Shown in pieces: positions 5,875-61,468 of a stretch of DNA of 64,000 nucleotides (position 1 is the first letter of the stretch; each line of letters opens with the position of its first letter). The notes under the pieces were generated by a model, which saw only the letters and a program-made list of their open reading frames with translations, ran no database searches and had not been told where the DNA came from. A program made the translations under genes and the position numbers. Origin of the DNA: Thecamonas trahens ATCC 50062 (taxonomy: Eukaryota; Protista; Apusomonadida); contig NW_013657662.1 in assembly GCF_000142905.1 (NCBI RefSeq), positions 186,001 through 250,000 on the forward strand. The letters are read 5' to 3'.

Positions 5875-6046
5875 ATGAGCACAGCCGAGACTGCGGGCGA
5901 CCTCTCGCGCAAGCGCCGCCGCAGCAACGAGGCCGAGGCCGGGGCCGGGGCCGGGGCCGGGGCCGGGGCCGGGGCCGGGGCCAGTGGCGAGCCAGGCCCT
6001 CCGCGGCGGCGGCGGAAGCGGTCGCGGTGGGACGCCGAGGGGAGCA

Positions 6047-6083
<37 letters not shown>

Positions 6084-6886
6084 AATGGGGAAGACGGCGA
6101 GCTCTGCGGCACTTGCTGCGAGTACGCCCAGTGGTGCTTCTACCGCTGCGGCGGGAACAGGAGCCGCCGCATCGGGCGGGCTGGCTGTCGAGGCGGTGAC
6201 GCTCGACGTGGTGGTGGCGGTGACGGGCGTGTCGACGCGGACGGCGGCAGAGAGCCTGGTGGCGCTAGTGGAGACGCTCGCTGGACGGGTGGTCGGCTGG
6301 GCGGCAGCGATGGAGCCGATGCTTGGCGTGCACAAGGGCCACATCTTTGTCTGCTTTGCCGATCCGGCGTCGGTTGCTGTGGCGCTATCCAAGGTCCACG
6401 GCTTTGTCCTCGACGGCGCCACCCTCGCTGTCTCGACCCATATCTCGTCGCTCGGCCCGCGCTACCCGCGCGGCGCGCCCAACGCGCCGTCGATGGTAGC
6501 CAACAGGGTGTATGTCGGCGGCCTGGCTGAGCAGATCACCGCTGCGGACGTCCAGGACCTACTGGAGCCGTTCGGCCCACTGCGTTCAGTTCACCTTGTC
6601 GAAGCCAAGCGCCCGCCGGCCATCCCTGGTCGCCCACTTCCGCCGGCGCCGCCGCCAGGCGCCCACGCTGGCTTTGCCTTTGTCGAGTTTGCCATCGCTG
6701 GCTGCGTCCCCGCTACCATCGCCGGCCTCAACGGCATGGATCTCGTTGGCAAGCCGCTCACCCTCGCCCCAGCCGCCACCCTCACCCACGCCCCCACTCC
6801 ATCTGTTCGTTACATCTCACCGGCCTTTGCCCCCTGGGTCGCGCCCACCGCTGCCGCGCCTGCGGCTGCCGCGCCGGCCCCAGCGC
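5875..6886 (+). CDS. RRM splicing factor, U2AF65/PUF60-like; truncated by assembly gap
   Basis: KRSRWD motif, a degenerate first RRM, then NRVYVGGL..VQDLLEPFGPLRSVHLV..HAGFAFVEF..IAGLNGMDL (RNP2/RNP1). Runs into Ns. Confidence 0.7.
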
Positions 6887-7821
6887 NNNNNNNNNNNNNN
6901 NNNNNNNNNNNNNNNNNNNNNNNNNNNNNNNNNNNNNNNNNNNNNNNNNNNNNNNNNNNNNNNNNNNNNNNNNNNNNNNNNNNNNNNNNNNNNNNNNNNN
7001 NNNNNNNNNNNNNNNNNNNNNNNNNNNNNNNNNNNNNNNNNNNNNNNNNNNNNNNNNNNNNNNNNNNNNNNNNNNNNNNNNNNNNNNNNNNNNNNNNNNN
7101 NNNNNNNNNNNNNNNNNNNNNNNNNNNNNNNNNNNNNNNNNNNNNNNNNNNNNNNNNNNNNNNNNNNNNNNNNNNNNNNNNNNNNNNNNNNNNNNNNNNN
7201 NNNNNNNNNNNNNNNNNNNNNNNNNNNNNNNNNNNNNNNNNNNNNNNNNNNNNNNNNNNNNNNNNNNNNNNNNNNNNNNNNNNNNNNNNNNNNNNNNNNN
7301 NNNNNNNNNNNNNNNNNNNNNNNNNNNNNNNNNNNNNNNNNNNNNNNNNNNNNNNNNNNNNNNNNNNNNNNNNNNNNNNNNNNNNNNNNNNNNNNNNNNN
7401 NNNNNNNNNNNNNNNNNNNNNNNNNNNNNNNNNNNNNNNNNNNNNNNNNNNNNNNNNNNNNNNNNNNNNNNNNNNNNNNNNNNNNNNNNNNNNNNNNNNN
7501 NNNNNNNNNNNNNNNNNNNNNNNNNNNNNNNNNNNNNNNNNNNNNNNNNNNNNNNNNNNNNNNNNNNNNNNNNNNNNNNNNNNNNNNNNNNNNNNNNNNN
7601 NNNNNNNNNNNNNNNNNNNNNNNNNNNNNNNNNNNNNNNNNNNNNNNNNNNNNNNNNNNNNNNNNNNNNNNNNNNNNNNNNNNNNNNNNNNNNNNNNNNN
7701 NNNNNNNNNNNNNNNNNNNNNNNNNNNNNNNNNNNNNNNNNNNNNNNNNNNNNNNNNNNNNNNNNNNNNNNNNNNNNNNNNNNNNNNNNNNNNNNNNNNN
7801 NNNNNNNNNNNNNNNNNNNNN
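6887..7821. other. Assembly gap (N run)
   Basis: 935 N. Confidence 1.
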
Positions 7822-8425
7822 AGACGCCTCGCGCTCACGCTCGCGCTCTGGCCGCGTGCTCAAAAAGTCGTCGCGCCTCGATGGCGCCATCGACATTGAT
7901 CTTGTCATCAAGGAAGTCGAGGGCCGCGACACTCTGCCCAAGCCGCGGAAGCGTAAGCGTTCGCGCGGCTCCACCTCCAGCTCGCCTGCCGTCCAATCGC
8001 CGATGGCATCTGGCGCGCCCACTCCCATCCCATCAGCCACAGCCTCTTTTGCTGTGCATGCACCGGCCGCGCCAGCTCAGGTCCCAGTCGCCACGGCAGC
8101 TACCGGCTCGGCCTTCACCGCCTCCGTCCAGCAGCACCCGCCCAAGAAGCACAAGCCGCTCAGCACTGTGCCGGCTCCCGCGTCACCGGTCATCAGTCCG
8201 CCCAACCCCAACCTCACCCCGGCAGCCATAAGGCGTGCACCCATCGCTGCCGCCGGCCCGAATGCCGCCGCCACCGCCGTCGCCGCTCCGCTGCCTGCCC
8301 CCGTGCCGGCACCACTTGCCTCTCCTGCGCTCGTGCCTGAGCCCCTCCAGCCCGCCACCCACACGTCGCCGCCACTCATGGTGCCCCAGCCGCTCCAGCC
8401 GCCGCCCGGCTCGGCCGTCCTGTAA
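7822..8425 (+). CDS. 3' part of a Pro/Ala-rich protein with NLS-like KPRKRKRS; 5' end lies in the gap
   Basis: Open frame from the gap to TAA 8425 with coding-like codons. May or may not belong to the RRM gene. Confidence 0.45.
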
Positions 8426-8806
8426 TCGCCTGCTCGCGCGCTGGCCAACATCCTCATCAAAGTACCAGTCGCGCGCTTGTCCATTCACCGGTGTTCCTGG
8501 GCCGACTGCCGACCCGTGTGCCGCCTTCCACGTGACCGGTCGACCCACCCCACCCCACCCCCACCCCCCCATCCCCTCCCCATGCAGCCGACACCATCCA
8601 CCCCCCACCCATCCCTTCCCTCGCCGCTCACTCCGTCTACCCTCGCGGCGCCCTATGCCGCACCCGAGGCTCCCCCGGGCGCTGCCGTCGCCCTCCGTCC
8701 GGTCGCCGTGTTCTCTGCCGCCGCCGACCCCGACTCGGAGCCCGCCCCCCCCCACGCTGCCCTCTCACTGCCACAAACAGCATCGCCGGCAGAGTCGGAC
8801 GATGAC

Positions 8807-11800
8807 ATGGTTCTGGATCTGGTGTGGGACGGGGACTCGCCCAGGGATCACGACGCGCTCTCGCCGCTGCTGGTGGTCGGCGACGGTTCGGCTGACGACG
8901 ACGACGACGAGCTGACCGGCTTTGCGTCGCGCGGACGCAGCTCCCGGTCCCGACGTTGTCACCCCACCCGCTGCCTCTCCTCGCGCCGCGGCAAGGGCAT
9001 AGCCTGCGCTGGCGCCGCGGTCCTTCTCCTCATCATCTACCTGATTCTAGTTGCAGTCCAACTGGCGTCGCTGGCACGGCTCGATGCATCGGTGTCCGGC
9101 CAGGTCCGCGCCGACCAGTGCAGCGATCCAGACGCCATCCCATTCGCGCTCGCGCTCACCCTCGACTCACCGTCTTGGTTTACTGCCAGCCTTGACGCCA
9201 CCCGGGTCGACATCCGAGCCGCATCTTCGGGCACTGTCCTTGCCTCGGTCGCGCTCCCGCACACCACCATCCGCTACGGCCGCCACACCGCGCCACTCGC
9301 ATCCAAACTCGCCTTTAATCACCAGGCACTACAACATGCCGCTGACTTGGCGTCGGTTCTGGCACGGCGTGCGTTCAATGCGTCCTACGCCGCTGCCCAC
9401 ACGCCGCCGAGCCTCATCCTCGACGCCAAGCTCACCATCCGTGCCCCGGCACTGCTCAGCATTCCGATATCGCACACTCTCCACCAAGCCGTCGTTCTCC
9501 AGCCACCGCCGCCGCCACCGTTGTCGCCCTCTGGCGCCGCCACCCAGCCACCGCCACCGCCCATGATCACCCTCACCGGTGCAGAGCTTGGTGAGAGCAC
9601 TTTCTCGGCCCATTTTAAGCTGCATGCTCCGGCCACTATCCAGCTGACGGTGCTGACGCCGCCGCTGGACGTTGTCGTAGCGGCAGGCGGCGCAGATGGC
9701 ACGGGCGGCCCGGACGACGCTCCCCAGCTTGTGGCCGTCCACGCTTCACCGACACGCTGGGGCGAGACAGCCAGCTTGCGCGGCCCGGCGCCGCTCCAGC
9801 TCGACCTAGAGGTCGCACGCACGCCATCAGCCGCGACAGCGCTCTCGCAGCTGCTCGCCGACGTACTCCAGCCATCAACCCACCGTGCGTATGCTCCGGC
9901 CCTGGCGCTGATCGGTGCCAATCCAGGAACGGACGCCCCGTGTCTCTTGCAGACGCTCCTCAACCGACTTCATCTCGACCTTCCCCAGTCGTCAGCCTTT
10001 GCACCGGAGCGCGACTGGCTCTCGCCTCTCATCAACGGCTCAGCGTTGGACCCATCTGTTGCTGACGGAACGACACACAACGCGCCGCTCGCCGGCAAGA
10101 TTCTGGACGTTCTGATGGCAACCACCGACGGGTCAACGGTGGTTGTCCAGGCTCTGGTCAACGCTTCGGCCGTGACAGGCTCTTCCCTGGACGTCGGCAT
10201 CATCGGAATGCCATCGTTCGAGGCCTCGCTCTACCTCACGCCAGGCGTTGACCTCCCGCCTACAGTCGTCGCTGACTTGCCGGGCGGATTGGCTGCGCCA
10301 CTGGGCACACTCAGGCTCTCAGCAGTTGCGACTAACGAGTTGATTAGAGTCTCAGCAGCAGTTACCATCGACTCGATGCCGCTGCTTCAGGCTCTTGTGC
10401 TCCCTGCGCTCCCCCTGTGGGAGGTGGACGATGTGCCGCAGCATCTCTTCACCAACCCGCTCTTTGCCCTCCGCGAGTTTGCCGATAGCCCGGACGGCCG
10501 TCCGCTGTACGGACTCGGCGCCCGGCTGGTGCCGTCAGCATCGCCGCAGGCCTCGATCTGGTCGCGTCTCGCGACAGAGTTGCGCTTGGAGGGGCTTGCA
10601 CCTTCGGCGACGTGGTTTGCCGAGCTTCCGCCGCCGCCACCGGGTGCACCGCCGCTGTTTGAGATTGCCTCGACGGTGGCGACCATTGACGGACCGCTGC
10701 TGAGCGGAACCGCAACATGCCGCCTCGCGATCCCGCACGTGCTCGATGGCGTGGTTGTTCGCGCCGCGCTCCCTCAGATGGACGCTGCAGTGGTGGCGAC
10801 GTCGGATGAGAGCCTGGCACCGAGCCTGGCACCGGCGCTGCACGGCCGGTCTGACGCGGACGTGGTTGTACTCTCGACCGGACCGGTGTCTGTTCACGGC
10901 GCAGTTGACGTGGTTTCGTCGACGATGGCGGCGTCGGCGCTCTCGCAGTGGATGGGCGGCGGCATTGTGCCTGTCTTTGCACGAGTCGCCCACTCTGCCC
11001 CGGGTCATCTCCCATCTGTCTTCCACGCCCTCCTCTCGGGTATTCGGTGGCGATACACGTTGGGCAGCGCGAGCTCGCTGTACGAGCTGCGAAAGGTTTA
11101 CGTGGCGCCGATTACGGACATTGCCATCGTGACACTCAAGCCACAGCTCTGGCTCGGCCTCGAGTGGTTGCATCTCTCGCTGACGGTGCCGGGTGTGACC
11201 GACCTTCCGGTCTGGCTGGTCGATGCCGATGCAGAGGTGGCGCAGATTGCGTGGTCGGCCTTCACCGTTGCGTCCGACGCAGTCAACACCATGGACATCT
11301 ATGCGTTTGCCTCCAACGTACCGCTGCTTGGCGAAGCTGTGGCCAGCCTCGATCTCGAGGTCGTTGTCCGCCCGCCGCCGACCACTGCCGCCGACTCGTT
11401 TATCACCGCCCTGCTCGCCGGCGTGCGGGTGGACCCGGTCCAGTCCGGGAGCGGCGACGGGCTCGCATCCCTGGTCGACGACATTGTGTTTGCCGGCGCT
11501 GACCCTGCGAGTCCGGCATCATCGTTTGTAGTCACCTCGGGCCTCGTCCTTTCCAACAACGTGGTCGAGATGACTGTGCCACCGGTTGCGCTGCGCGTTG
11601 TCGCTAGCGGGGCGAGCGGCGGTGCACGCGGGACGCTGCTCACTCTTGCATCGGCGCCGATTGCGATCCAGACTGGGCAAGATAAGGTGAGCCTTATCGG
11701 GCGTGTGGCACCAACGCGTAACGCGACGCTTCTGCGCGAGCTCGGGAGCGAGGTGCTGAAGCTTGGCAACGGCGAGGCTGCTGCTGGGCTGACGGCCGAG

Positions 11801-28046: not shown

Positions 28047-28471
28047 CTTCCCTGCCCCAGTAGCCACAGCGTCGGGTGTCCGGCCCCTCGTCGCCCCCCT
28101 CCCTCCCTCCCCTCCTCGCCCTACCCCCTTCGGCCAGCTCGCCCGGCACCCCACGCCTCGGCCTCAGCCGCCAATTCGCGGCGCGACAAAGGGCAATGAC
28201 CGGAGCGAACAATGTGGCAGGCGGTGGTGACTAACCGCCCCAGTGGCAAAATAGTCGTTGCTATTGGGCAGGCATGTCAGTCGGCGGCACGTTTGTTGAC
28301 TTGACTGGGCGGTAGGAGCCAACTGCGGGTCTGGCCCTGGTCTGGCGGCAAGACGTTGGAGCGCACATACCCACACCCACACTTCTCCCACCCTACTTTA
28401 CTCCACCCTCTCTCTCTACCTCCCTCCCTCTCCCTCTCCGCCGCCACCGCCACACACTCACACCGCCGGTC

Positions 28472-31400
28472 ATGGCCGCCCGCCATCAGCAGGCCAAACG
28501 GGCCAGTAGGCTCTCTGTCTACTCGGACGACGCGGACCTGGCATTCCTGGCACAGCTGGAAGAGCCGTCGTTGGCGCTGAGCTCGTCGGGCTCAAACTCA
28601 GAGTCGGTGTGCGGACTGGCACTCGCACCCAACTCCCCCTCGCCGCGCCTTGTCCGCTCGCCGCTTGCCTCTCATCCACACGCGCTCGGCTACACGCTCC
28701 AGGACTCGTCGTCGGGCTCGAGCTCGAGCTCAAGCTCGTCGCGATGCAGCATCCGTCGCCCGGTCCGGCACCGCAAAGCCCATCCGCCCGCTCGCTCCTC
28801 ACCACTTCGCCATGTACAGAACGCGGCGTCGTCAACAGACTCGACGACGTCGTCGTCATCGTCACCCTCGCCTTCGAGCGCGTCGCCCTCCTCTGAATCG
28901 AGCTCGCGCCGCGGCAACGTCCAGGACGTGGACGATCTCGGAACGCCTGCAGGCTCAGACGCGTCGATGGTCAACTTTCCCATCTCGACACCGCTCTCGC
29001 GGTCGTCGGCGGCGCTCCACCGCAAGCGGCCGGCATCGGGCTTCTTCTCGCAGCAGATTGTCGACTTGGAAGACGACACCTTTCAGCGCGACTCGATCAA
29101 GATGTACCGCTTGAAGCCACGGCGGCGCTCGCTCTCAGCGGTCCACGTGGTGAACAATCCCAACGCCGGTGGAAGCACCAAACTGTTGGAGAAGGCCTCA
29201 TCCTCGCTCCACGCCATTGGCGAGGGCTTTGACATCAACATTGACGATGATGCGCTCGACCTCAATGACTTTGACTTTGACGACATTGGCGACACGGTGG
29301 CCCTCGACTTTGCCGACGAGAGTAATGCTGCTGGCCCGATCGAACTCGACGCTCTGCCTGGCGGAGACGGCAAGTCGTGGTCGTCGTCGGGCTCGGACGA
29401 AGCCGCACAAGGCGCGGCCGCCGTGTCCACGCCGCGCGGCACCGCTGGCTCAAGCGCCGCGCTCACCAATAAGGCCGGAAGCAAGACCGACGCCAGTGCA
29501 CCAGACTCGAACGAGGCTGCAGGCGATGAGGCGGCGCCTCGCCGCTCGCGTTGGCGCGAAAAGTCGATCCGATTCCTCGACTCGATCCCGGTCACCATCT
29601 TTATGCTTGTCATCACTCTCTTTGTTCTCTTTGCCGACGACACACTCATCATTGTTGCGCCGGACAAGGATGACAGCCTCGACTTGTACCTACTCATCTC
29701 CAAGAACTTTGTCTTTCTCTGCTTCCTCGTGGAGCTGGTGTGGACGTCTGTGGTCAAGCCAAAAGACTACTTTCTCACCTTTTTCTTCTGGCTCGATGTC
29801 CTTGCCTTGGTCTCGTTTGCGCCCGATGTTGTCCTTCTCGTCGCTGACTACGACATTGTGACGCTGGTCTCGGCGCTGGCTGTGGCCCGAACTGGGCGAG
29901 CCGCCCGCGCCTCAGCGCGTGCCGCCCGCCTCGTCCGTGTTGTCCGTGTTGTCAAGTTTGCACGCATTGTGCAGCGCGGACACTCGGAGATAGCGGCCGA
30001 TGACAACGTCATCGACTCGCTCGAGACAAATCTTAACCGCAGCGCGCCCGCAGCGATGTCGACATCCGCAAGCGACGCCGGCGGTGGAGGCGGCGAGGTG
30101 ACGACGCTCGGCGAGCCGAGTCGCCTCGGCTCGCGGCTCATCAACCGGACGACCAACAAGGTCATCGCCATTGTCCTCATCTTGTTCCTGGTCACCTCTA
30201 TTGCTCAAATCACTGCGCCGTGGCGGCACCACGTGACGGCCGGCGTGTCGGCGCTGGAAGATTCAGCCGCCGCGCTGGGCGGCGTCACCAGTCCCACCTT
30301 TGTCAACGGCCCGCTGGCCTCGTTTCTCGAGGCCTACGGCTCGTCACTGCTCTGGCTCTCTATCTCTGATGTGGAGGTCTACGGCACGATCGAACAGGCC
30401 TCGCGCGTCCGCGAGGTATACATTCAGGAAGGTATGTCGCTAAGCAAGGCGTCGGTGGCATGGATCGACGTGAAGGAGACCGAAGTCATCCAAGCCATCT
30501 TCAACATCGCAATCCTTGTCTTTATCATCGTCATCATGGCGCTCGGCAACATGCTCATCACCCGCGATGCCAATCGGCTCCTCATCGTGCCGGTAGAGAA
30601 GATCATGGGCGTGGTCCGTGTCCTGCTTGACCACGCCAAGGTACCCGGCAAGCGCAAGGCTGGCGGGCCGGTTCAGCAAGCCAAGCAGAGCGAGACGGGG
30701 CGCAGCGGGTCGATGACTTCGCTACTGGCGCTGGACGACTCAGGCGCAAGGGTCGGCTCCGGTCGCTTGGGCGGCTCGGGTCGGCAGCTGTCTGAAGCCG
30801 AAGAACTGCTGCAAATGCTGTCGGAGATCGATGGCTCGCTGGCAATGGCGCAACAGGATGTCGAGTCGACTGAGACTAAGGTTCGCATCCGCGAGGCCGA
30901 ACTCGAGTCGGTCACCCTCTTCACCGTCCAACTCGAGATGTTGCTCTGTGTCGCGTTGCGAAAGCTGGAGTCCAAGGCACTGGCCAAGTGGGCAGCGTGG
31001 CATGAGTGGGGCCTCGTCCCACTTGCAGACCGCATCAGGGTTGCGCTCGCCGAGGCAGGTGGCGACTCGGCCGCGCTGGTAGCCCGACTCTCCCAGCACC
31101 CGCTCGCCCTGCCATCGATCGACGATCTGCAGCGGCACCGGGCTCAGCTCACGTTTGAGATCCTCGGACCGAGCGGCGGCGTCGGGGCTGATGGCGAGGA
31201 CGTGCGGCCGACTGTTCAGCTGCAGTCTGGCGCACTGCCGCACATTGTGGAGCACTTGTGCCACCCACTGGCGCATGATGCCGACTTTGACCGGGTCTTC
31301 TTTCTTACATACCGGGCGTATCTTTCGCCGGCTGAGCTACTGCAGCGGCTCATCGTTCGGTTCTCGCTTACGCCAGACGTGTACTACATTCGGGCGTCGC

Positions 31401-32476
31401 GCGATGGGCTTGACGCCTACTCGCAGTGGCGGCACGAGGTGCAACACCCGGTCCGGGTCCGGATTCTCTCGCTTGTCCGGCTCTGGCTCAAGTCGTACTT
31501 TTTCGACTTTCATGCCGATCCGGTCATGGTGGCGCTACTTGTTGACGTCCTCGTCCCGCTCCTTCGGGCCTCGCGAGTCTTTTCTGAGGCTGGGCGGCAG
31601 CTCCGGGTCCTGCTCGAGAACAAGCTGCTGGGACTCGAGGTCGGTGATGATGATGACTTTGGCTCAGAGACGACCGAGACGACAACGTCGTCGATAGTAA
31701 TTCCGCGGATGGCAGCGACGCGCGGCGCGCGGCTGAAGCTCCTCAACGTCGACCCTATGGAGGCAGCGCGGCAGCTCTCGCTCATAGAGCACGAGCTGTA
31801 CGGACAGATTGGCAAGCATGAGCTGTTGGACCTTGCATGGTCGCGTGACGACGCCGATACCCGCGCACCCAACGTGCTCGCCCTCATCAACCACTTTAAC
31901 GGAGTAACCGAGTGGGTCCAAGTCGCGCTCCTCTCCGAGGCCTCGGTCAAGACACGCGCCGCTATCCTCCGCACCTTTATCGACATCCTTGACAAGCTCT
32001 TTGCCATCCGCAACTTTAACGGCGCCATGGAGCTGGTCTCGGGCCTCTCGTCGGCGGCTGTGTCGCGGCTGCGCAAGACGTGGAAAGAGGTCGACGAGAC
32101 GCGGCGGTCGCGGTTCGAGGCTATCACAGCTTCGCTCTCGGCGCTCGGCAACTATGCGCAGTACCGCCGGTTGGTTGCCGACTACATGGAAGTTCCGGTC
32201 ATCCCGTACCTCGGTATGTACATGGGCGATCTGGTGTTCATCGAGGAAGGCAATGAGGATTACGTCGGCGACGGTCTCGTCAACTTTGACAAGTGCTACC
32301 AGATCGCCAACGCCATCCAGCTTGCCCTCCACTGGCGGCGGGCGTCGTTCCCGTTCTTTGAAGTTGCCGAGGTCAAAAGCCTCCTCACCTCTAGCATTGC
32401 CGAGGTCACCTCCAATCCAACCGATGATCGTGCGCTGTACAAGCTCTCGCTCAAGGTCGAGCCGCGCAAGAAATGA
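28472..32476 (+). CDS. Voltage-sensor-like 6-TM module + HAMP-like linker + RasGEF (REM and CDC25 domains)
   Basis: S1-S3 helices ending FFFWLDVLALVS; S4 ARTGRAARASARAARLVRVVRVVKFAR; two further TMs. REM: SGALPHIVEHL..FFLTYRAYLSPAELL..VRLWLKSYFFDF. CDC25: ARQLSLIEHELY..NFNGAMELVSGL..VIPYLGMYMGDLVFIEEGN..LVNFDK..LSLKVEPR. Confidence 0.88.
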   Translation: MAARHQQAKRASRLSVYSDDADLAFLAQLEEPSLALSSSGSNSESVCGLALAPNSPSPRLVRSPLASHPHALGYTLQDSSSGSSSSSSSSRCSIRRPVRHRKAHPPARSSPLRHVQNAASSTDSTTSSSSSPSPSSASPSSESSSRRGNVQDVDDLGTPAGSDASMVNFPISTPLSRSSAALHRKRPASGFFSQQIVDLEDDTFQRDSIKMYRLKPRRRSLSAVHVVNNPNAGGSTKLLEKASSSLHAIGEGFDINIDDDALDLNDFDFDDIGDTVALDFADESNAAGPIELDALPGGDGKSWSSSGSDEAAQGAAAVSTPRGTAGSSAALTNKAGSKTDASAPDSNEAAGDEAAPRRSRWREKSIRFLDSIPVTIFMLVITLFVLFADDTLIIVAPDKDDSLDLYLLISKNFVFLCFLVELVWTSVVKPKDYFLTFFFWLDVLALVSFAPDVVLLVADYDIVTLVSALAVARTGRAARASARAARLVRVVRVVKFARIVQRGHSEIAADDNVIDSLETNLNRSAPAAMSTSASDAGGGGGEVTTLGEPSRLGSRLINRTTNKVIAIVLILFLVTSIAQITAPWRHHVTAGVSALEDSAAALGGVTSPTFVNGPLASFLEAYGSSLLWLSISDVEVYGTIEQASRVREVYIQEGMSLSKASVAWIDVKETEVIQAIFNIAILVFIIVIMALGNMLITRDANRLLIVPVEKIMGVVRVLLDHAKVPGKRKAGGPVQQAKQSETGRSGSMTSLLALDDSGARVGSGRLGGSGRQLSEAEELLQMLSEIDGSLAMAQQDVESTETKVRIREAELESVTLFTVQLEMLLCVALRKLESKALAKWAAWHEWGLVPLADRIRVALAEAGGDSAALVARLSQHPLALPSIDDLQRHRAQLTFEILGPSGGVGADGEDVRPTVQLQSGALPHIVEHLCHPLAHDADFDRVFFLTYRAYLSPAELLQRLIVRFSLTPDVYYIRASRDGLDAYSQWRHEVQHPVRVRILSLVRLWLKSYFFDFHADPVMVALLVDVLVPLLRASRVFSEAGRQLRVLLENKLLGLEVGDDDDFGSETTETTTSSIVIPRMAATRGARLKLLNVDPMEAARQLSLIEHELYGQIGKHELLDLAWSRDDADTRAPNVLALINHFNGVTEWVQVALLSEASVKTRAAILRTFIDILDKLFAIRNFNGAMELVSGLSSAAVSRLRKTWKEVDETRRSRFEAITASLSALGNYAQYRRLVADYMEVPVIPYLGMYMGDLVFIEEGNEDYVGDGLVNFDKCYQIANAIQLALHWRRASFPFFEVAEVKSLLTSSIAEVTSNPTDDRALYKLSLKVEPRKK

Positions 32477-32576
32477 ATGCACCTCCAGACCGAGAGCACG
32501 CCCAGTGGCCGCAAATTCGCATTCGGCCTGCTGCACTCGTCTTCTCCGAAGTTCGGAACACGAGCAAGCACCGGCC

Positions 32577-33659
32577 ATGTCGGCGACCATCCAGCAGCAG
32601 CTCCGCGAGTACCAGCTACGCCGCAAGCAGGAAGCAGCGCAAGGCGAGGAGGCCGGCAAGCAGGCCGAGGCATCCGCGGTGGCCGAGGGGGTGGCCCAGG
32701 ATGCGGCCAAGGAGGCAGCCGAGATGTCGGCGGGGGCGGCGCCGTTGGGGAACACTGCCGTCTCGGCGGCCGACCCATACGCGACACGGCCACCGCAGAC
32801 GCCACCGCCACCGCAGCCGCAGCCGAAGCTGCAGCCGCACTCGCAACCGTCGGGTGCGGTGACCGACGTTGCTGCGCTGCTTCAACGAATTGCAGATCTC
32901 GAGTCGGAGAACGCGGCGCTCCGGGCCGGGGCGGCGGTGGTGGTGGCCGGACCGGGTGAGACGGACCCGACGGCGGCGGTGCCCGGCTCGCTGGCGCGCG
33001 GACCGGTGCCGGTCACGCCGGGTGGAGCGATTCCGATCCAAATTGTTGGCGGCGGCGAGGCGGTGGCGCGGCTGCAGGCTGAGAACGCAGCCTTGGCCGA
33101 CGCGCTTCGTAAGGCCAAGCGGAAGGTCCAGCGCGAGCGACAGCGTGCAGACCAGTCGGCGGCGTCGACCGAGCTCGAATACCTGCACATGGCCGAAGAG
33201 CTCAAGATGCTCGAGTCAGAGCGCAATCGGCTGGTAGAGCTCACCAACCGGCTCTCGACCAACCTGGCAAGCATGCAGTCAATGGCGTCGGAGTCGGCGA
33301 CTGCCAACAGTGGTCTCCACGCCGATGCCGCAGTCAAGCGCCAGTTTGAGGCACAATCGGCCGAGCTCGAGGCCGAGCTCCACGCCGCAAAGACTGCGCT
33401 CTCGTCGCTCGAGTACGAGAACCGGCTCAACCTTCGCCAGCTCGCTGCCGACCAAGACTCGGTTCGCAAGCTGGCCAAGGACCGCGCCGACATCTCGTCG
33501 CAGCTCGCCCAGAGCCAGGCGATCAACTCGAGCCTTGCATGGTCCAACTCGATGACCCAAGCACATCGTGCAGCCCTCATGCACAAGCTGGCGCTCACCG
33601 AGTCGGCCCTCGCCTACGTCGCTGCCAAGAACAAGGAGCTCGAGGCCAAGGCCGGTGTT

Positions 33660-33696
<37 letters not shown>

Positions 33697-33698
33697 AC

Positions 33699-33744
<46 letters not shown>

Positions 33745-34631
33745 ACTCATCCGAGTCGGCCACCTCGCGGCGCGCCGCCGAAGCTTCAGCTGCCACCCGC
33801 GACTTTAAGCGGTACTTTGAGGCGGCATTTGGCGAGAAGTTTGGATCGTCGGCCGACTCGACCATCTCGTCGTCGTCGTCGGTCACGGCGCGGACAATGG
33901 TCTCGAGCTCGGCCTCGGCCTCGGACTCGGGCTCCAGCTCGGCCTCGGGTTCGGACTCGGCCTCGGCCTCGTCGTCATACAGTTTCGATGGTTCTTTGTA
34001 CTCGGCGGCGTCATCGACAATGTCAGTGGTCACCGACTCGGGTGCCCGCTCTGGCTCGTCAGCGCCGTGGAACGCCGATCTTGATGCATCATCCAAGGCA
34101 AGTCCGGACAAGAAGAGCAAGCGCGGGGAAAAGGGCAACGACAGTGCAAAGTCCAAGGCAAAGTCCAAGGCCAAGTCCAAGTCCAAGGCCAAGTCCAAGG
34201 CCAAGTCCAAGGCCAAGTCCAAGGCTAAGATCAAATCAAAGCCAAAGCCAAAGACGGGCAACGCTGGCGAAAGCCCGGCAAAGACCAAGCGGCGTCGCCG
34301 AAGTGCCCAGGCTTCACCGGAAGCAAAGGCTAAGACTGACAAGGCCGGCAGTGGACGGAGGCGGCGAAGCAAGGGCGACAAAGGTAAGGCTCGGCGGAAG
34401 CGCAGGTCGCGCAAGAGCGGTGGTGCGCCGGAGACGGACGAGCTGCCTCACAGCAAGAGCAAGCGCAGGAGCAAGGGCCGGAAGCGACGATCGCGTAAGC
34501 GTGTCGACGCCGGCTCCGTACCTGAGAGCGATGGGAAGAAGGGCCGGCGCCGGCGGCGCAGCCGCAGCGGCAGCAAGGGCGAGTCACCGTCCAAGAAGGA
34601 GCGGTCACGGCCAAAGCGGAGCTCCGGGTGA
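32577..34631 (+). CDS. Coiled-coil protein with GS repeat, Ser-rich region and highly basic Lys/Arg tail
   Basis: ORF from ATG 32577 (MSATIQQQL) with heptads, (GS)n at 33660-33745 and KSKA repeats. Confidence 0.65.
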
Positions 34632-60197: not shown

Positions 60198-61468
60198 TTA
60201 CTGCGACGATGGCGGAGGCGCGCCGCCGCGGGCAGCCTTGGCGGCGTCCTCCTGGCGCTTGAGCGCGACGCCGCGCTGGTAGATGTGCTGCGCAGCGGCC
60301 GGGTTGGCCGGCACGCCCTCGGCGTGCATGAGGCACTCGGCAAAGGCGATGCAGCCCTGAGACGAGCCCTTCTCACAGGCGATGCGGTAGTACTTGGCGC
60401 CCTTGGCCTTGTCGAGCGCGACGCCGTTGCCGGTAAAGTGTGAGACGCCGAGGAGGAAGCAGCCGTCGGCCGAGCCGAGGCGGCAGGCCTTGCCAAACAT
60501 GGCTGTCGCCCGCAGGTTGTCCTTCTCCACGCCGGTCCCGTGCAGGTAGGCCGAGCCGAGCGAGAAGCAGGCTGCGATGGACTCGAGGTTGCAGCCCTTT
60601 TGCAGGAACTTGACCATGTCTGCGGTCTCCTTGACGACGGCGGCGGTGCGGGCGGCATTGAGGCAGCCGGTGGCGTCGTCGAGCGAGCATGACTTTGCGA
60701 AAAAGTCTGCGGCGGCATCGGCGTCCTTCTCCACGCCCGAGCCGGTCTGATACATGATGCCGAGGTTGTTGCACGAGCCGCCCTCGCCGAGGTTGCACGC
60801 CTTCTCAAACGAGGCAAGTGCATCAGGCATGGAGACCGGAGTGCCTGAACCATGGTACTGGGTCAGGCCCAGATGGTAGCACCCATCGGGCAGCGAGGCA
60901 TCGCAAGCCCGACGGAAGTACTCGACCGCCTTCTCCTTGTTCACCGCCACGTCCTTGCCCAGCAGGTACCGCACCCCGAGGTTGTTGCACGCCTCACCAT
61001 CCTGTCCACCACACTTGTTCTCGAGCTCTTCCAGCAGATCAGATGTGTCGAGGATGTGTGACTGGTCGAACTGTGTTCAGGAGGGCATGGGGAGGGCGTG
61101 GTGAGGGAGAGGATGATGGAGATTGACGCGCCAAGGTGGGCGGGGGGGGGGGGGGGGGGGGAGGGGAGGGGGGGTGGGGGGAGGGGTGGGAGGGGAGGGG
61201 AGGGGGACGGACAGAGTGGGGAGTTGGGGAGCTTGTTGACAAGTGGGNNNNNNNNNNNNNNNNNNNNNNNNNNNNNNNNNNNNNNNNNNNNNNNNNNNNN
61301 NNNNNNNNNNNNNNNNNNNNNNNNNNNNNNNNNNNNNNNNNNNNNNNGGGGGGGGGGAGGGGAGGGGGGTGGGGGAGGGTGGAGGGAGGGAGGGGGACGG
61401 ACAGAGTGGGGAGTTGGGGGAGCAGGGCACACAAGGCGTACGTCTTTGTAGTTGTCGGCAGAGCTCAT
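60198..61468 (-). CDS. Sel1-like repeat (Hcp/COA7-like, Cys-rich) protein; exons 61468-61442 and 61070-60198
   Basis: Repeats of C..LG..Y..G.GV.KD...A...F.KAC. The GTACGC...CAG intron spans the second gap. Confidence 0.82.
61248..61347. other. Assembly gap (100 N) within a poly-G intron
   Basis: N run. Confidence 1.

Follow-up and report, generated by a model that had tools for sequence, protein, structure and literature searches.

A predicted pore-less voltage-sensor-type membrane module fused to a SOS-like Ras exchange factor in Thecamonas trahens

Several described proteins place a voltage sensor outside a classical ion channel. The voltage-sensing phosphatases (Ci-VSP and the TPTE family) join a pore-less S1-S4 voltage sensor to a cytoplasmic signalling enzyme acting at the inner leaflet, with the enzyme hanging on S4 through a short linker, and Ci-VSP shows that a voltage sensor can drive such an enzyme. 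SLC9C1, the sperm Na+/H+ exchanger, is a voltage-sensor-gated transporter, and it and Hv1 are other cases in which a voltage sensor works without a classical pore domain, although their outputs are transport or proton conduction and not an enzyme that acts on a GTPase. Voltage-sensor-type class III adenylyl cyclases occur in Paramecium, Plasmodium and Tetrahymena (Weber et al. 2004, cited in PMC10651576) and in Phytophthora (PPTG_13136 and PPTG_13761, PMC12223298), and hyperpolarisation-stimulated cAMP formation in Paramecium is ascribed to a voltage-sensor cyclase (PMC10651576). On the side of Ras activation, SOS1, RasGRF1 and yeast Cdc25 are REM-CDC25 exchange factors, and D. discoideum RasGEFW is reported to have a transmembrane domain and to sit at the plasma membrane (PMC11696275). 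We found no paper describing a voltage sensor coupled to a RasGEF.

The gene examined here lies in a 64,000-nucleotide window of Thecamonas trahens ATCC 50062 (GCF_000142905.1, contig NW_013657662.1, positions 186,001 to 250,000 of the forward strand), and all coordinates below are positions within this window on the + strand. A single uninterrupted ORF at 28472-32476 encodes 1334 amino acids plus stop in one exon, and the public gene model equals this ORF, since the identical protein is in NCBI, UniRef and EukProt. The original prediction described this ORF as a four-TM voltage-sensor-like region with an Arg-rich S4, followed by TM5, an extracytoplasmic loop, TM6, a HAMP-like linker and a REM-CDC25 RasGEF without a GYG filter, and our analysis confirms that observation with the exception of the HAMP-like linker. 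Hydrophobic helices lie at residues 376-394, 405-423, 439-471, 556-582 and 672-690, S4 is where it had been placed, and TM6 is followed by the motif that had been predicted to end it. The N-terminal region (28472-29533, aa 1-354) is low complexity (S 20%, A 13%, D 9%), has no Pfam hit and no paralogue match, and is probably disordered and cytoplasmic.

The C-terminal half is a strong REM + CDC25 RasGEF, in agreement with the predicted coordinates. Pfam RasGEF_N (PF00618) matches aa 917-1023 (31220-31540; E 1.6e-20, 73.7 bits against a cut-off of 28.3) and aligns to the SOS1 REM, while RasGEF (PF00617) matches aa 1097-1275 (E 1.2e-53, 182.1 bits against 23.1) within a CDC25-homology domain at 31760-32473 whose fold extends to the C-terminus. 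The catalytic core aligns over REM and CDC25 to SOS1 (E 2.9e-43), yeast Cdc25 (E 7.7e-42) and RasGRF1 (E 9.6e-34), with the three conserved RasGEF blocks and the helical-hairpin Glu kept. In the hairpin block (the SOS1 L938 and E942 region) the protein reads DLVFIEEGN against NILKTEEGN in SOS1, so that Glu and Asn are kept and Leu is replaced by Val. Compared with SOS1, RasGRF1 and yeast Cdc25, there is no DH-PH, histone fold, SH3 or proline-rich tail, and as an integral membrane protein it does not need to be recruited.

To examine the membrane half we built an AF2 model (pLDDT 80, pTM 0.75), in which residues 372-499 (29585-29968) form a predicted four-helix voltage-sensor domain, with pLDDT above 90 over S1-S3. 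S1 spans aa 372-395, S2 401-428 with F418 and E421, S3 437-457 with D442, and S4 472-499 (29885-29968) with nine basic residues in an every-third-position pattern, R473, R476 and R479, then R483, R486, R489, R492, K495 and R498. The best structural match by VIA-align is the Ci-VSP voltage sensor (Z 13.2, rmsd 2.8 Å, 134 of 136 residues, with sequence identity of only 17%), and 31 of the top 32 rows are voltage-sensor-containing channels or transporters, SLC9C1 among them (Z 10.4). Foldseek gives a TM-score of 0.74 to Ci-VSP, though its E-values are poor (0.3 or worse) and a Z around 13 can arise among helical bundles. The protein's own Pfam Ion_trans (PF00520) hit is below the cut-off (E 0.033, 13.8 bits against 25) and its best PDB hit is weak (Hv1, E 0.32), but the family profile hits Nav, Cav and Kv voltage sensors over S1-S4 only, down to E 2.3e-9 for Nav1.7. 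Of 54 relatives, 34 hit Ion_trans, and in every relative listed individually the hit covers only the first half of the profile, with six passing the Pfam cut-off, so membership holds by transitive homology. Among 143 family members, the position of F418 is Phe in 138, that of E421 is Glu or Asp in all 143 and that of D442 is Asp in 142, these charge-transfer positions being assigned by alignment. The family median is nine basic residues in S4; by group the median is 9 in the cyclase, PDE, RGS, SH3 and unclassified groups, 7 in RhoGEF types and 6 in RasGEF types, and the nine seen here is the highest among RasGEF types.

Beyond S4 the module does not resemble a channel pore. An S4 extension and disordered S4-TM5 loop, cytoplasmic (29969-30112, aa 500-547; pLDDT 37-69, poorly occupied alignment columns), is followed by an amphipathic pre-TM5 helix plus TM5 (30113-30217, aa 548-582; helix 194-224 of the model) with the family motif S.vG..L...TT.rVI, conserved across all output classes. 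Between TM5 and TM6 lies a predicted extracytoplasmic α/β domain of about 85 residues (30218-30472, aa 583-667) with two helices, a β-hairpin, a short helix and two more strands, modelled at pLDDT 93-97. It is not a re-entrant pore loop: no G[YFL]G occurs anywhere in the protein, Ion_trans and PDB profile matches stop at or just after S4 wherever the matched range was listed, and the TM5-ectodomain-TM6 model matches no pore domain or selectivity filter among the top 50 rows by Foldseek or VIA-align. TM6 continues as one long cytoplasmic helix (30473-30637, aa 668-722; helix 314-368 of the model) carrying the motif DA..LV..PIERM...V..L, which is conserved in cyclase, PDE, RGS, RhoGEF and RasGEF members. 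Pfam HAMP (PF00672) gives no hit even at E <= 1, and the uninterrupted helix runs into a Gly/Ser/Lys-rich spacer (30638-30793, aa 723-774; pLDDT 40-50) that is probably disordered. A conserved linker motif, EA..LL.ML..ID.SL, follows (30794-30856, aa 775-795); in hmmsearch alignments it is shared with dictyostelid and Ceratiomyxa RasGEF-type members and aligns to the helix that precedes the catalytic domain in cyclase-type members. A motif written after seeing those alignments occurs in 10 of 21 RasGEF-type proteins against 0.065 expected after shuffling. The remaining linker (30857-31219, aa 796-916) is probably helical and is not conserved in sequence among paralogues, with no tblastn hit of this part.

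The module has 1,320 relatives at E <= 1e-3 in the representative library, far beyond chance; about 1,300 representative protist proteins carry it. Most appear to be class III cyclases, with 74 of 154 proteins classified by phmmer (150 of them hits of that search) carrying a cyclase domain, and others are PDE, RhoGEF-PH, RGS or RasGEF fusions. Cyclase-carrying homologues share S1-S4, the TM5-ectodomain-TM6 hairpin and the post-TM6 helix, and two cyclase-type paralogues are present in this genome. The T. trahens protein is itself not a cyclase, having no Guanylate_cyc hit and a match to the family profile that ends at aa 799, at the start of the profile's catalytic region. RasGEF versions occur at six loci of this genome, in dictyostelids, in Lithocolla and in Ceratiomyxa. 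The dictyostelid proteins (Cavenderia XP_004358992.1, D. purpureum XP_003291660.1 and D. cf. discoideum KAM9986321.1), which we infer probably correspond to RasGEFW, have the same architecture of module + REM + CDC25 at about 27% identity, but their S4 keeps only three basic residues. In a quick tree, modules of GEF-type fusions fall on one side of a split from cyclase, PDE and RGS types (SH-aLRT 87). The architecture is not entirely unrecorded, as dictyostelid homologues are annotated as RasGEFs and Pfam 38.1 lists part of the module as PF26726 "Helical_RasGEFs", although none of these sources describes a voltage sensor. PF26726 is precomputed on nine homologues and the nearest Atlas cluster (score 0.97) carries it in 86% of members, so this protein likely belongs as well.

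The original interpretation, that the K+-channel-like module of alveolate AC-alpha cyclases had its output swapped for a Ras exchange factor and senses rather than conducts, is partly supported. A swapped output is a fair description given the fusions above, and without a pore sensing is more likely than conduction, but TM5-loop-TM6 is not K+-channel-like, and the homology shown is to cyclase-type relatives in general and not to Paramecium or Plasmodium AC-alpha by name. The C-terminal K+ pore loop reported for the Paramecium enzyme has no counterpart here.

What our analysis establishes is a single gene for an integral-membrane, SOS-type Ras exchange factor by homology, whose membrane half combines a relative of the S1-S4 voltage-sensor domain, a TM5/TM6 hairpin holding a small predicted ectodomain, a long helix continuous with TM6 and, after the spacer, a second short conserved helix. 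The remainder is inference, including nucleotide exchange itself and any movement of gating charge, and rests on no functional data for any member with a GEF output. In this view, which we hold with moderate confidence, S4 facing F418/E421 in S2 and D442 in S3 would move with membrane potential, and that movement would pass through the pre-TM5 helix to the TM5/TM6 hairpin and down the TM6 helix. This would change how the linker helix holds the REM-CDC25 unit, most likely by releasing an autoinhibited state, so that Ras at the inner leaflet is loaded with GTP and membrane voltage may switch Ras on directly. Because the cyclase relatives must pair to be active, the module probably works as a dimer. 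The enzyme hangs on TM6 and not on S4, however, and about 190 residues separate TM6 from REM, including the spacer of about 50 residues, so rigid mechanical coupling as in Ci-VSP is unlikely. The three basic residues in the dictyostelid S4 also indicate that voltage sensing is not obligatory for this kind of GEF, and the conserved ectodomain suggests an extracellular input as well.

It is possible, though unlikely, that the ectodomain is the real sensor, working like the periplasmic domain of a two-TM bacterial sensor kinase or cyclase, with S1-S4 as a structural or modulatory partner and Ras activated by an extracellular cue. The domain is confidently modelled, carries family motifs such as R..E and A.FD, and the output is attached to TM6, which leaves it; the one weak Foldseek row with a comparable layout is a WalK sensor-kinase model (TMq 0.41). 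However, no known ligand-binding fold was recovered when it was searched together with TM5 and TM6, and the strongest conservation in the module lies in the gating-charge and charge-transfer residues, which a passive scaffold would not need. A similarly doubtful reading is a constitutive tether that only places REM-CDC25 next to membrane-bound Ras, recruitment being the main way SOS is activated, with the voltage-sensor features as inherited baggage. The long, partly disordered linker, the degenerate dictyostelid S4 and the simple plasma-membrane localisation of RasGEFW fit this, but this copy keeps all nine S4 charges plus F418, E421 and D442, the post-TM6 helix and linker motif are conserved between apusomonads and Amoebozoa, which an anchor would not require, and six RasGEF-type paralogues are kept in one genome.

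Conduction of protons or cations, through the voltage sensor itself (Hv1-like or omega pore) or through an oligomeric TM5/TM6 pore, with ion flux controlling the enzyme as was once proposed for the Paramecium cyclase, is very unlikely. The weak Hv1 hit and the K+ conductance historically linked to the Paramecium cyclase (PMC10651576) can be cited for it, but the missing selectivity-filter motif, the restriction of profile matches to S1-S4, the lack of any pore domain among the top 50 structural rows and the globular TM5-TM6 loop speak against it. Least likely of all is a gene-model artefact in which two adjacent genes, a membrane protein and a RasGEF, are read as one. High GC content produces long spurious open frames, and with no RNA from this organism, transcription of this copy is supported only by short near-identical metatranscriptome contigs, which could come from DNA carry-over. 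Against this, one frame stays open for 1386 codons, the linker motif between the halves is conserved, and the same fusion recurs at the six loci and in the other lineages, being carried in Lithocolla and Ceratiomyxa on single assembled transcripts marked as complete ORFs. No joints appear in any contig aligned to the gene, and one contig of unknown kind spans 29942-32013 colinearly.

Window 28472-32476 (+) is one open frame of 1334 codons, and the identical 1334-aa protein is on record in NCBI, UniRef and EukProt, so the public gene model is this ORF. The observation behind the original prediction, a multi-helix membrane region with an Arg-rich S4 continuing in one frame into REM and CDC25 domains, was borne out. 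Pfam finds RasGEF_N at aa 917-1023 (E 1.6e-20) and RasGEF at aa 1097-1275 (E 1.2e-53), together with a sub-threshold Ion_trans hit at aa 376-499 (E 0.033) that covers only profile positions 3-111 of 241. The REM-CDC25 unit aligns with SOS1 at E 2.9e-43, with yeast Cdc25 at 7.7e-42 and with RasGRF1 at 9.6e-34, and the conserved blocks and the hairpin Glu are in place. S4 sits at aa 472-499, where the original prediction placed it, and carries nine basic residues. The predicted hydrophobic helices flank it as expected, and no G[YFL]G motif occurs anywhere in the protein. Many overlapping ORFs of 150-880 aa surround and overlap the gene on both strands, including one at 31989-34631 (+), as expected from 65% GC, and those overlapping the CDS are treated as probably spurious.

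To examine how widely the membrane half is distributed, we ran a full HMMER scan with aa 355-770, which found 1,320 cluster representatives at E <= 1e-3 and 371 at E <= 1e-10. Among 54 long relatives, 34 hit Ion_trans, 21 carry a class III cyclase domain, 9 carry RasGEF, 2 carry RhoGEF-PH, 2 carry RGS and 1 carries a PDE. Local phmmer searches raise these counts to 74 cyclase-type, 9 CDC25-positive RasGEF-type proteins plus one REM-only fragment, and 6 PDE-type among 154 proteins, and the RhoGEF-PH and RGS fusions were confirmed individually. In every relative listed individually the Ion_trans hit covers only the S1-S4 half of the profile, and six of them pass the Pfam cut-off. A profile of 114 family members hits the voltage sensors of Nav1.7 (E 2.3e-9), Nav1.4, Nav1.5, Cav1.2 and Kv1.2, with these matches confined to profile positions 18-202. 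The membrane half is therefore a homologous module that has been widely reused. Named members come from dictyostelids (RasGEF and RhoGEF types), Lithocolla, Ceratiomyxa and metagenomes, while Atlas clusters point to green algae, diatoms and perkinsids. A further homologue search with the family alignment returned only six proteins, with no named alveolate cyclases among them, and the link is only to cyclase-type relatives in general. Pfam 38.1 already lists part of the module as PF26726 'Helical_RasGEFs'.

With a 114-row alignment, AlphaFold2 gives a confident model of aa 355-770 (pLDDT 80, pTM 0.75). In order, the model shows a pre-S1 helix, S1 to S4 with S4 part of one long helix, a disordered loop, an amphipathic helix running into TM5, an ectodomain of about 85 residues built of two helices, a β-hairpin, a short helix and two more strands, and TM6, which is continuous with a cytoplasmic helix to aa 722. 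An exhaustive VIA-align search puts the Ci-VSP voltage sensor first (Z 13.2, rmsd 2.8 Å, 134 of 136 residues), and voltage sensors of Nav, Cav, Kv, CatSper, TPC, KCNQ and SLC9C1 follow and fill 31 of the top 32 ranks. Foldseek against the PDB gave no match at E <= 0.001 for either of the two models built, though its best local match to the first is the same Ci-VSP protein (TM-score 0.74), and the fold assignment rests on VIA-align Z-scores and profile searches. TM5-ectodomain-TM6 was also folded alone (pLDDT 90.5) and matches nothing by Foldseek and only generic helical hairpins by VIA-align (Z 8.6 or less). As the ectodomain was searched only together with TM5 and TM6, we do not claim that it has no known fold. 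No pore domain appears among these matches, and the pore reading of TM5-loop-TM6 was rejected on this evidence, on the globular fold of the modelled loop, on the restriction of the profile matches to S1-S4 and on the absence of G[YFL]G. The module is thus predicted to be a voltage sensor plus a two-helix hairpin carrying an ectodomain, and it is not a channel. The suggestion of a HAMP-like linker was likewise rejected, since Pfam gives no HAMP hit and the model shows a single continuous helix after TM6.

Conservation across the family points at the sensor. Among 143 members aligned to a module HMM, F418 is Phe in 138, E421 is Glu or Asp in all 143, D442 is Asp in 142, and the S4 basic positions are Arg or Lys in 115-135 members each. 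The median number of basic residues in S4 is nine in cyclase, PDE, RGS, SH3 and unclassified types, seven in RhoGEF types and six in RasGEF types. This protein has nine, whereas the dictyostelid RasGEF-type proteins have only three. Dictyostelids also carry the same membrane module fused to RhoGEF-PH, in P0016 (Acytostelium XP_012748630.1) and P0034 (D. purpureum XP_003292884.1), where S4 has 6-8 basic residues, more than in their RasGEF version. The conserved residues are those that define a working voltage sensor, the gating charges and the charge-transfer centre.

Three elements outside S1-S4 are conserved across output classes: the pre-TM5 helix (S.vG..L...TT.rVI), the post-TM6 helix (DA..LV..PIERM...V..L) and a short helix that follows a variable spacer. 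In cyclase-type members this last helix abuts the catalytic domain. In this protein it is aa 775-795, and it is nearly the same in the dictyostelid and Ceratiomyxa RasGEF-type proteins. A motif that we wrote after seeing those alignments occurs in 10 of 21 RasGEF-type proteins, against 0.065 expected after shuffling. Such conservation inside an otherwise low-complexity linker argues that the output is regulated and not merely anchored.

The window is C18:186001-250000 of the assembly, and a paralogous locus of the same assembly is 99.9% identical to a protein that NCBI names as Thecamonas trahens ATCC 50062, which confirms the organism. The Thecamonas genome holds nine loci with the module. 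Six carry REM and/or CDC25, namely this gene on contig C18 and loci on contigs C61, C11, C37, C32 and C7. The RasGEF-type paralogue on C7 (36127-39953; positions 6948-8933 of locus sequence L020), recorded together with the protein P0001, has an EF-hand pair inserted inside the REM domain and may combine Ca2+ and voltage inputs; a 66%-identical orthologue occurs in ENA metagenome assemblies. Two paralogues match the whole cyclase-type family profile, including its catalytic part (E 1.8e-197 and 6.5e-154), although Pfam Guanylate_cyc does not detect them: C53:113479-116997 (L019 5078-8032, minus strand) and C18:443662-447750 (L017 5950-8466), the latter about 230 kb from this gene on the same contig. 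They look like divergent voltage-sensor-type cyclases outside stramenopiles and alveolates. The ninth locus, C43:295572-299549 (L016 4711-7179), is the paralogue whose membrane module is closest to this gene (41% identity over 294 tree columns; 56% over S1-S4). It has an SH3 domain in front of the module, and its open frame ends right after TM6; its output domain, if any, would lie in another exon.

A quick maximum-likelihood tree of the module was built from 74 rows, with all GEF, PDE and RGS types and a random 30 cyclase and 15 unclassified rows included and proteins covering fewer than 290 profile positions left out. It places all RasGEF and RhoGEF types on one side of a split from cyclase, PDE and RGS types (SH-aLRT 87, not decisive), which fits one early swap to GTPase-exchange outputs, and all named carriers of the GEF types belong to Amorphea. 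Orthology with the dictyostelid proteins is not resolved by this tree, and only the linker motif and best reciprocal similarity suggest it.

The interpretation in the original prediction, that the K+-channel-like module of alveolate AC-alpha cyclases has had its output replaced by a Ras exchange factor, giving a possible direct membrane-potential or ion-flux to Ras signalling device, was partly supported. We are highly confident of the architecture, which rests directly on the sequence, profile and model searches. In contrast, everything that concerns its operation is inferred, including charge movement, coupling, exchange activity on Ras and dimerization, and we consider voltage control of the GEF at best about as likely as not. 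The predicted topology puts the N-terminus, the S4-TM5 loop and everything after TM6 in the cytoplasm, where Ras is. In this view S4 would move with voltage, the pre-TM5 helix and the TM5/TM6 hairpin would relay this to the TM6 helix, and the conserved linker helix would then change its hold on REM-CDC25. Release of autoinhibition is the usual way RasGEFs such as SOS, RasGRP and Epac are controlled. Cyclase relatives must dimerize, so by analogy the module probably does too. Direct coupling is weakened by several points, as about 190 residues separate TM6 from REM, including a spacer of about 50 residues that is probably disordered, and the output sits on TM6 and not on S4. In addition, the dictyostelid S4 is degenerate, and a conserved ectodomain could receive another signal.

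Only a few ways are known in which membrane voltage acts on something other than an ion pore: VSP phosphatases, Hv1, SLC9C1 and the poorly characterised protist cyclases. Voltage-sensor enzymes are known as VSPs and as the protist cyclases (PMC10651576, PMC12223298), so the principle of a voltage sensor coupled to an enzyme is established, and what differs here is the attached RasGEF. Literature searches on voltage sensors with RasGEF or RhoGEF, on gefW and on surveys of RasGEF and RhoGEF evolution found no paper describing a voltage sensor coupled to a Ras or Rho exchange factor. D. discoideum RasGEFW is mentioned as having a transmembrane domain and a plasma-membrane location (PMC11696275) and is probably the dictyostelid homologue, though this is our inference and not based on sequence comparison.

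We regard the gene as a real and well-preserved member of an uncharacterised class in which a voltage-sensor-type module is joined to a RasGEF, with a function that is so far only predicted and that is of high interest for voltage-sensing and Ras-signalling research. A broader reading is possible but remains tentative, in which this gene is the best-preserved RasGEF version of a general protist 'voltage receptor', one membrane module (voltage sensor, ectodomain hairpin and transducer helices) that converts membrane potential directly into Ras, Rho, cAMP/cGMP, PDE or G-protein (RGS) signalling depending on the enzyme attached. If this is true, it would make a direct electrical input to Ras, with no channels or Ca2+ in between, testable for the first time. 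A voltage sensor wired to a Ras exchange factor would be a new output class, linking electrical state directly to the Ras network that drives motility, macropinocytosis and chemotaxis or electrotaxis in amoeboid cells. Since homologues exist in the genetically tractable Dictyostelium (probably gefW, plus a RhoGEF version), the idea can be tested quickly, and the Thecamonas copy is the natural candidate for biophysics because it keeps all nine S4 charges. The same module sits in front of at least five kinds of signalling enzyme, making it a potentially general and portable sensor and a possible part for voltage-controlled tools.

Transcript-level support for the fusion comes from complete ORFs in the Lithocolla and Ceratiomyxa transcriptome assemblies. 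For the Thecamonas gene itself, only two environmental metatranscriptomes hold short, near-identical pieces inside the gene (29886-30150, 30424-30565, 30580-30730 and 30664-30912), and one colinear 2,072-nt contig of unknown library kind spans S4 to CDC25, with no intron-like joints seen. The sequencing runs of a source designated organism A are also of unknown kind and may be DNA, and the depth peaks at 28335-28501 and 32677-32843 are cross-matches of low-complexity sequence, so these data allow no conclusion on transcription or transcript ends. Seawater and subsurface metatranscriptomes hold contigs with 0-3 differences per 150-414 nt to this locus (window 29886-30912 and 32551-32964), and a Thecamonas strain or a very close relative is therefore present in those samples. 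Elsewhere in the window, 6887-7821 and 61248-61347 are runs of N (assembly gaps), the first of which explains the apparent low-GC island at 6001-8000 in the composition profile.
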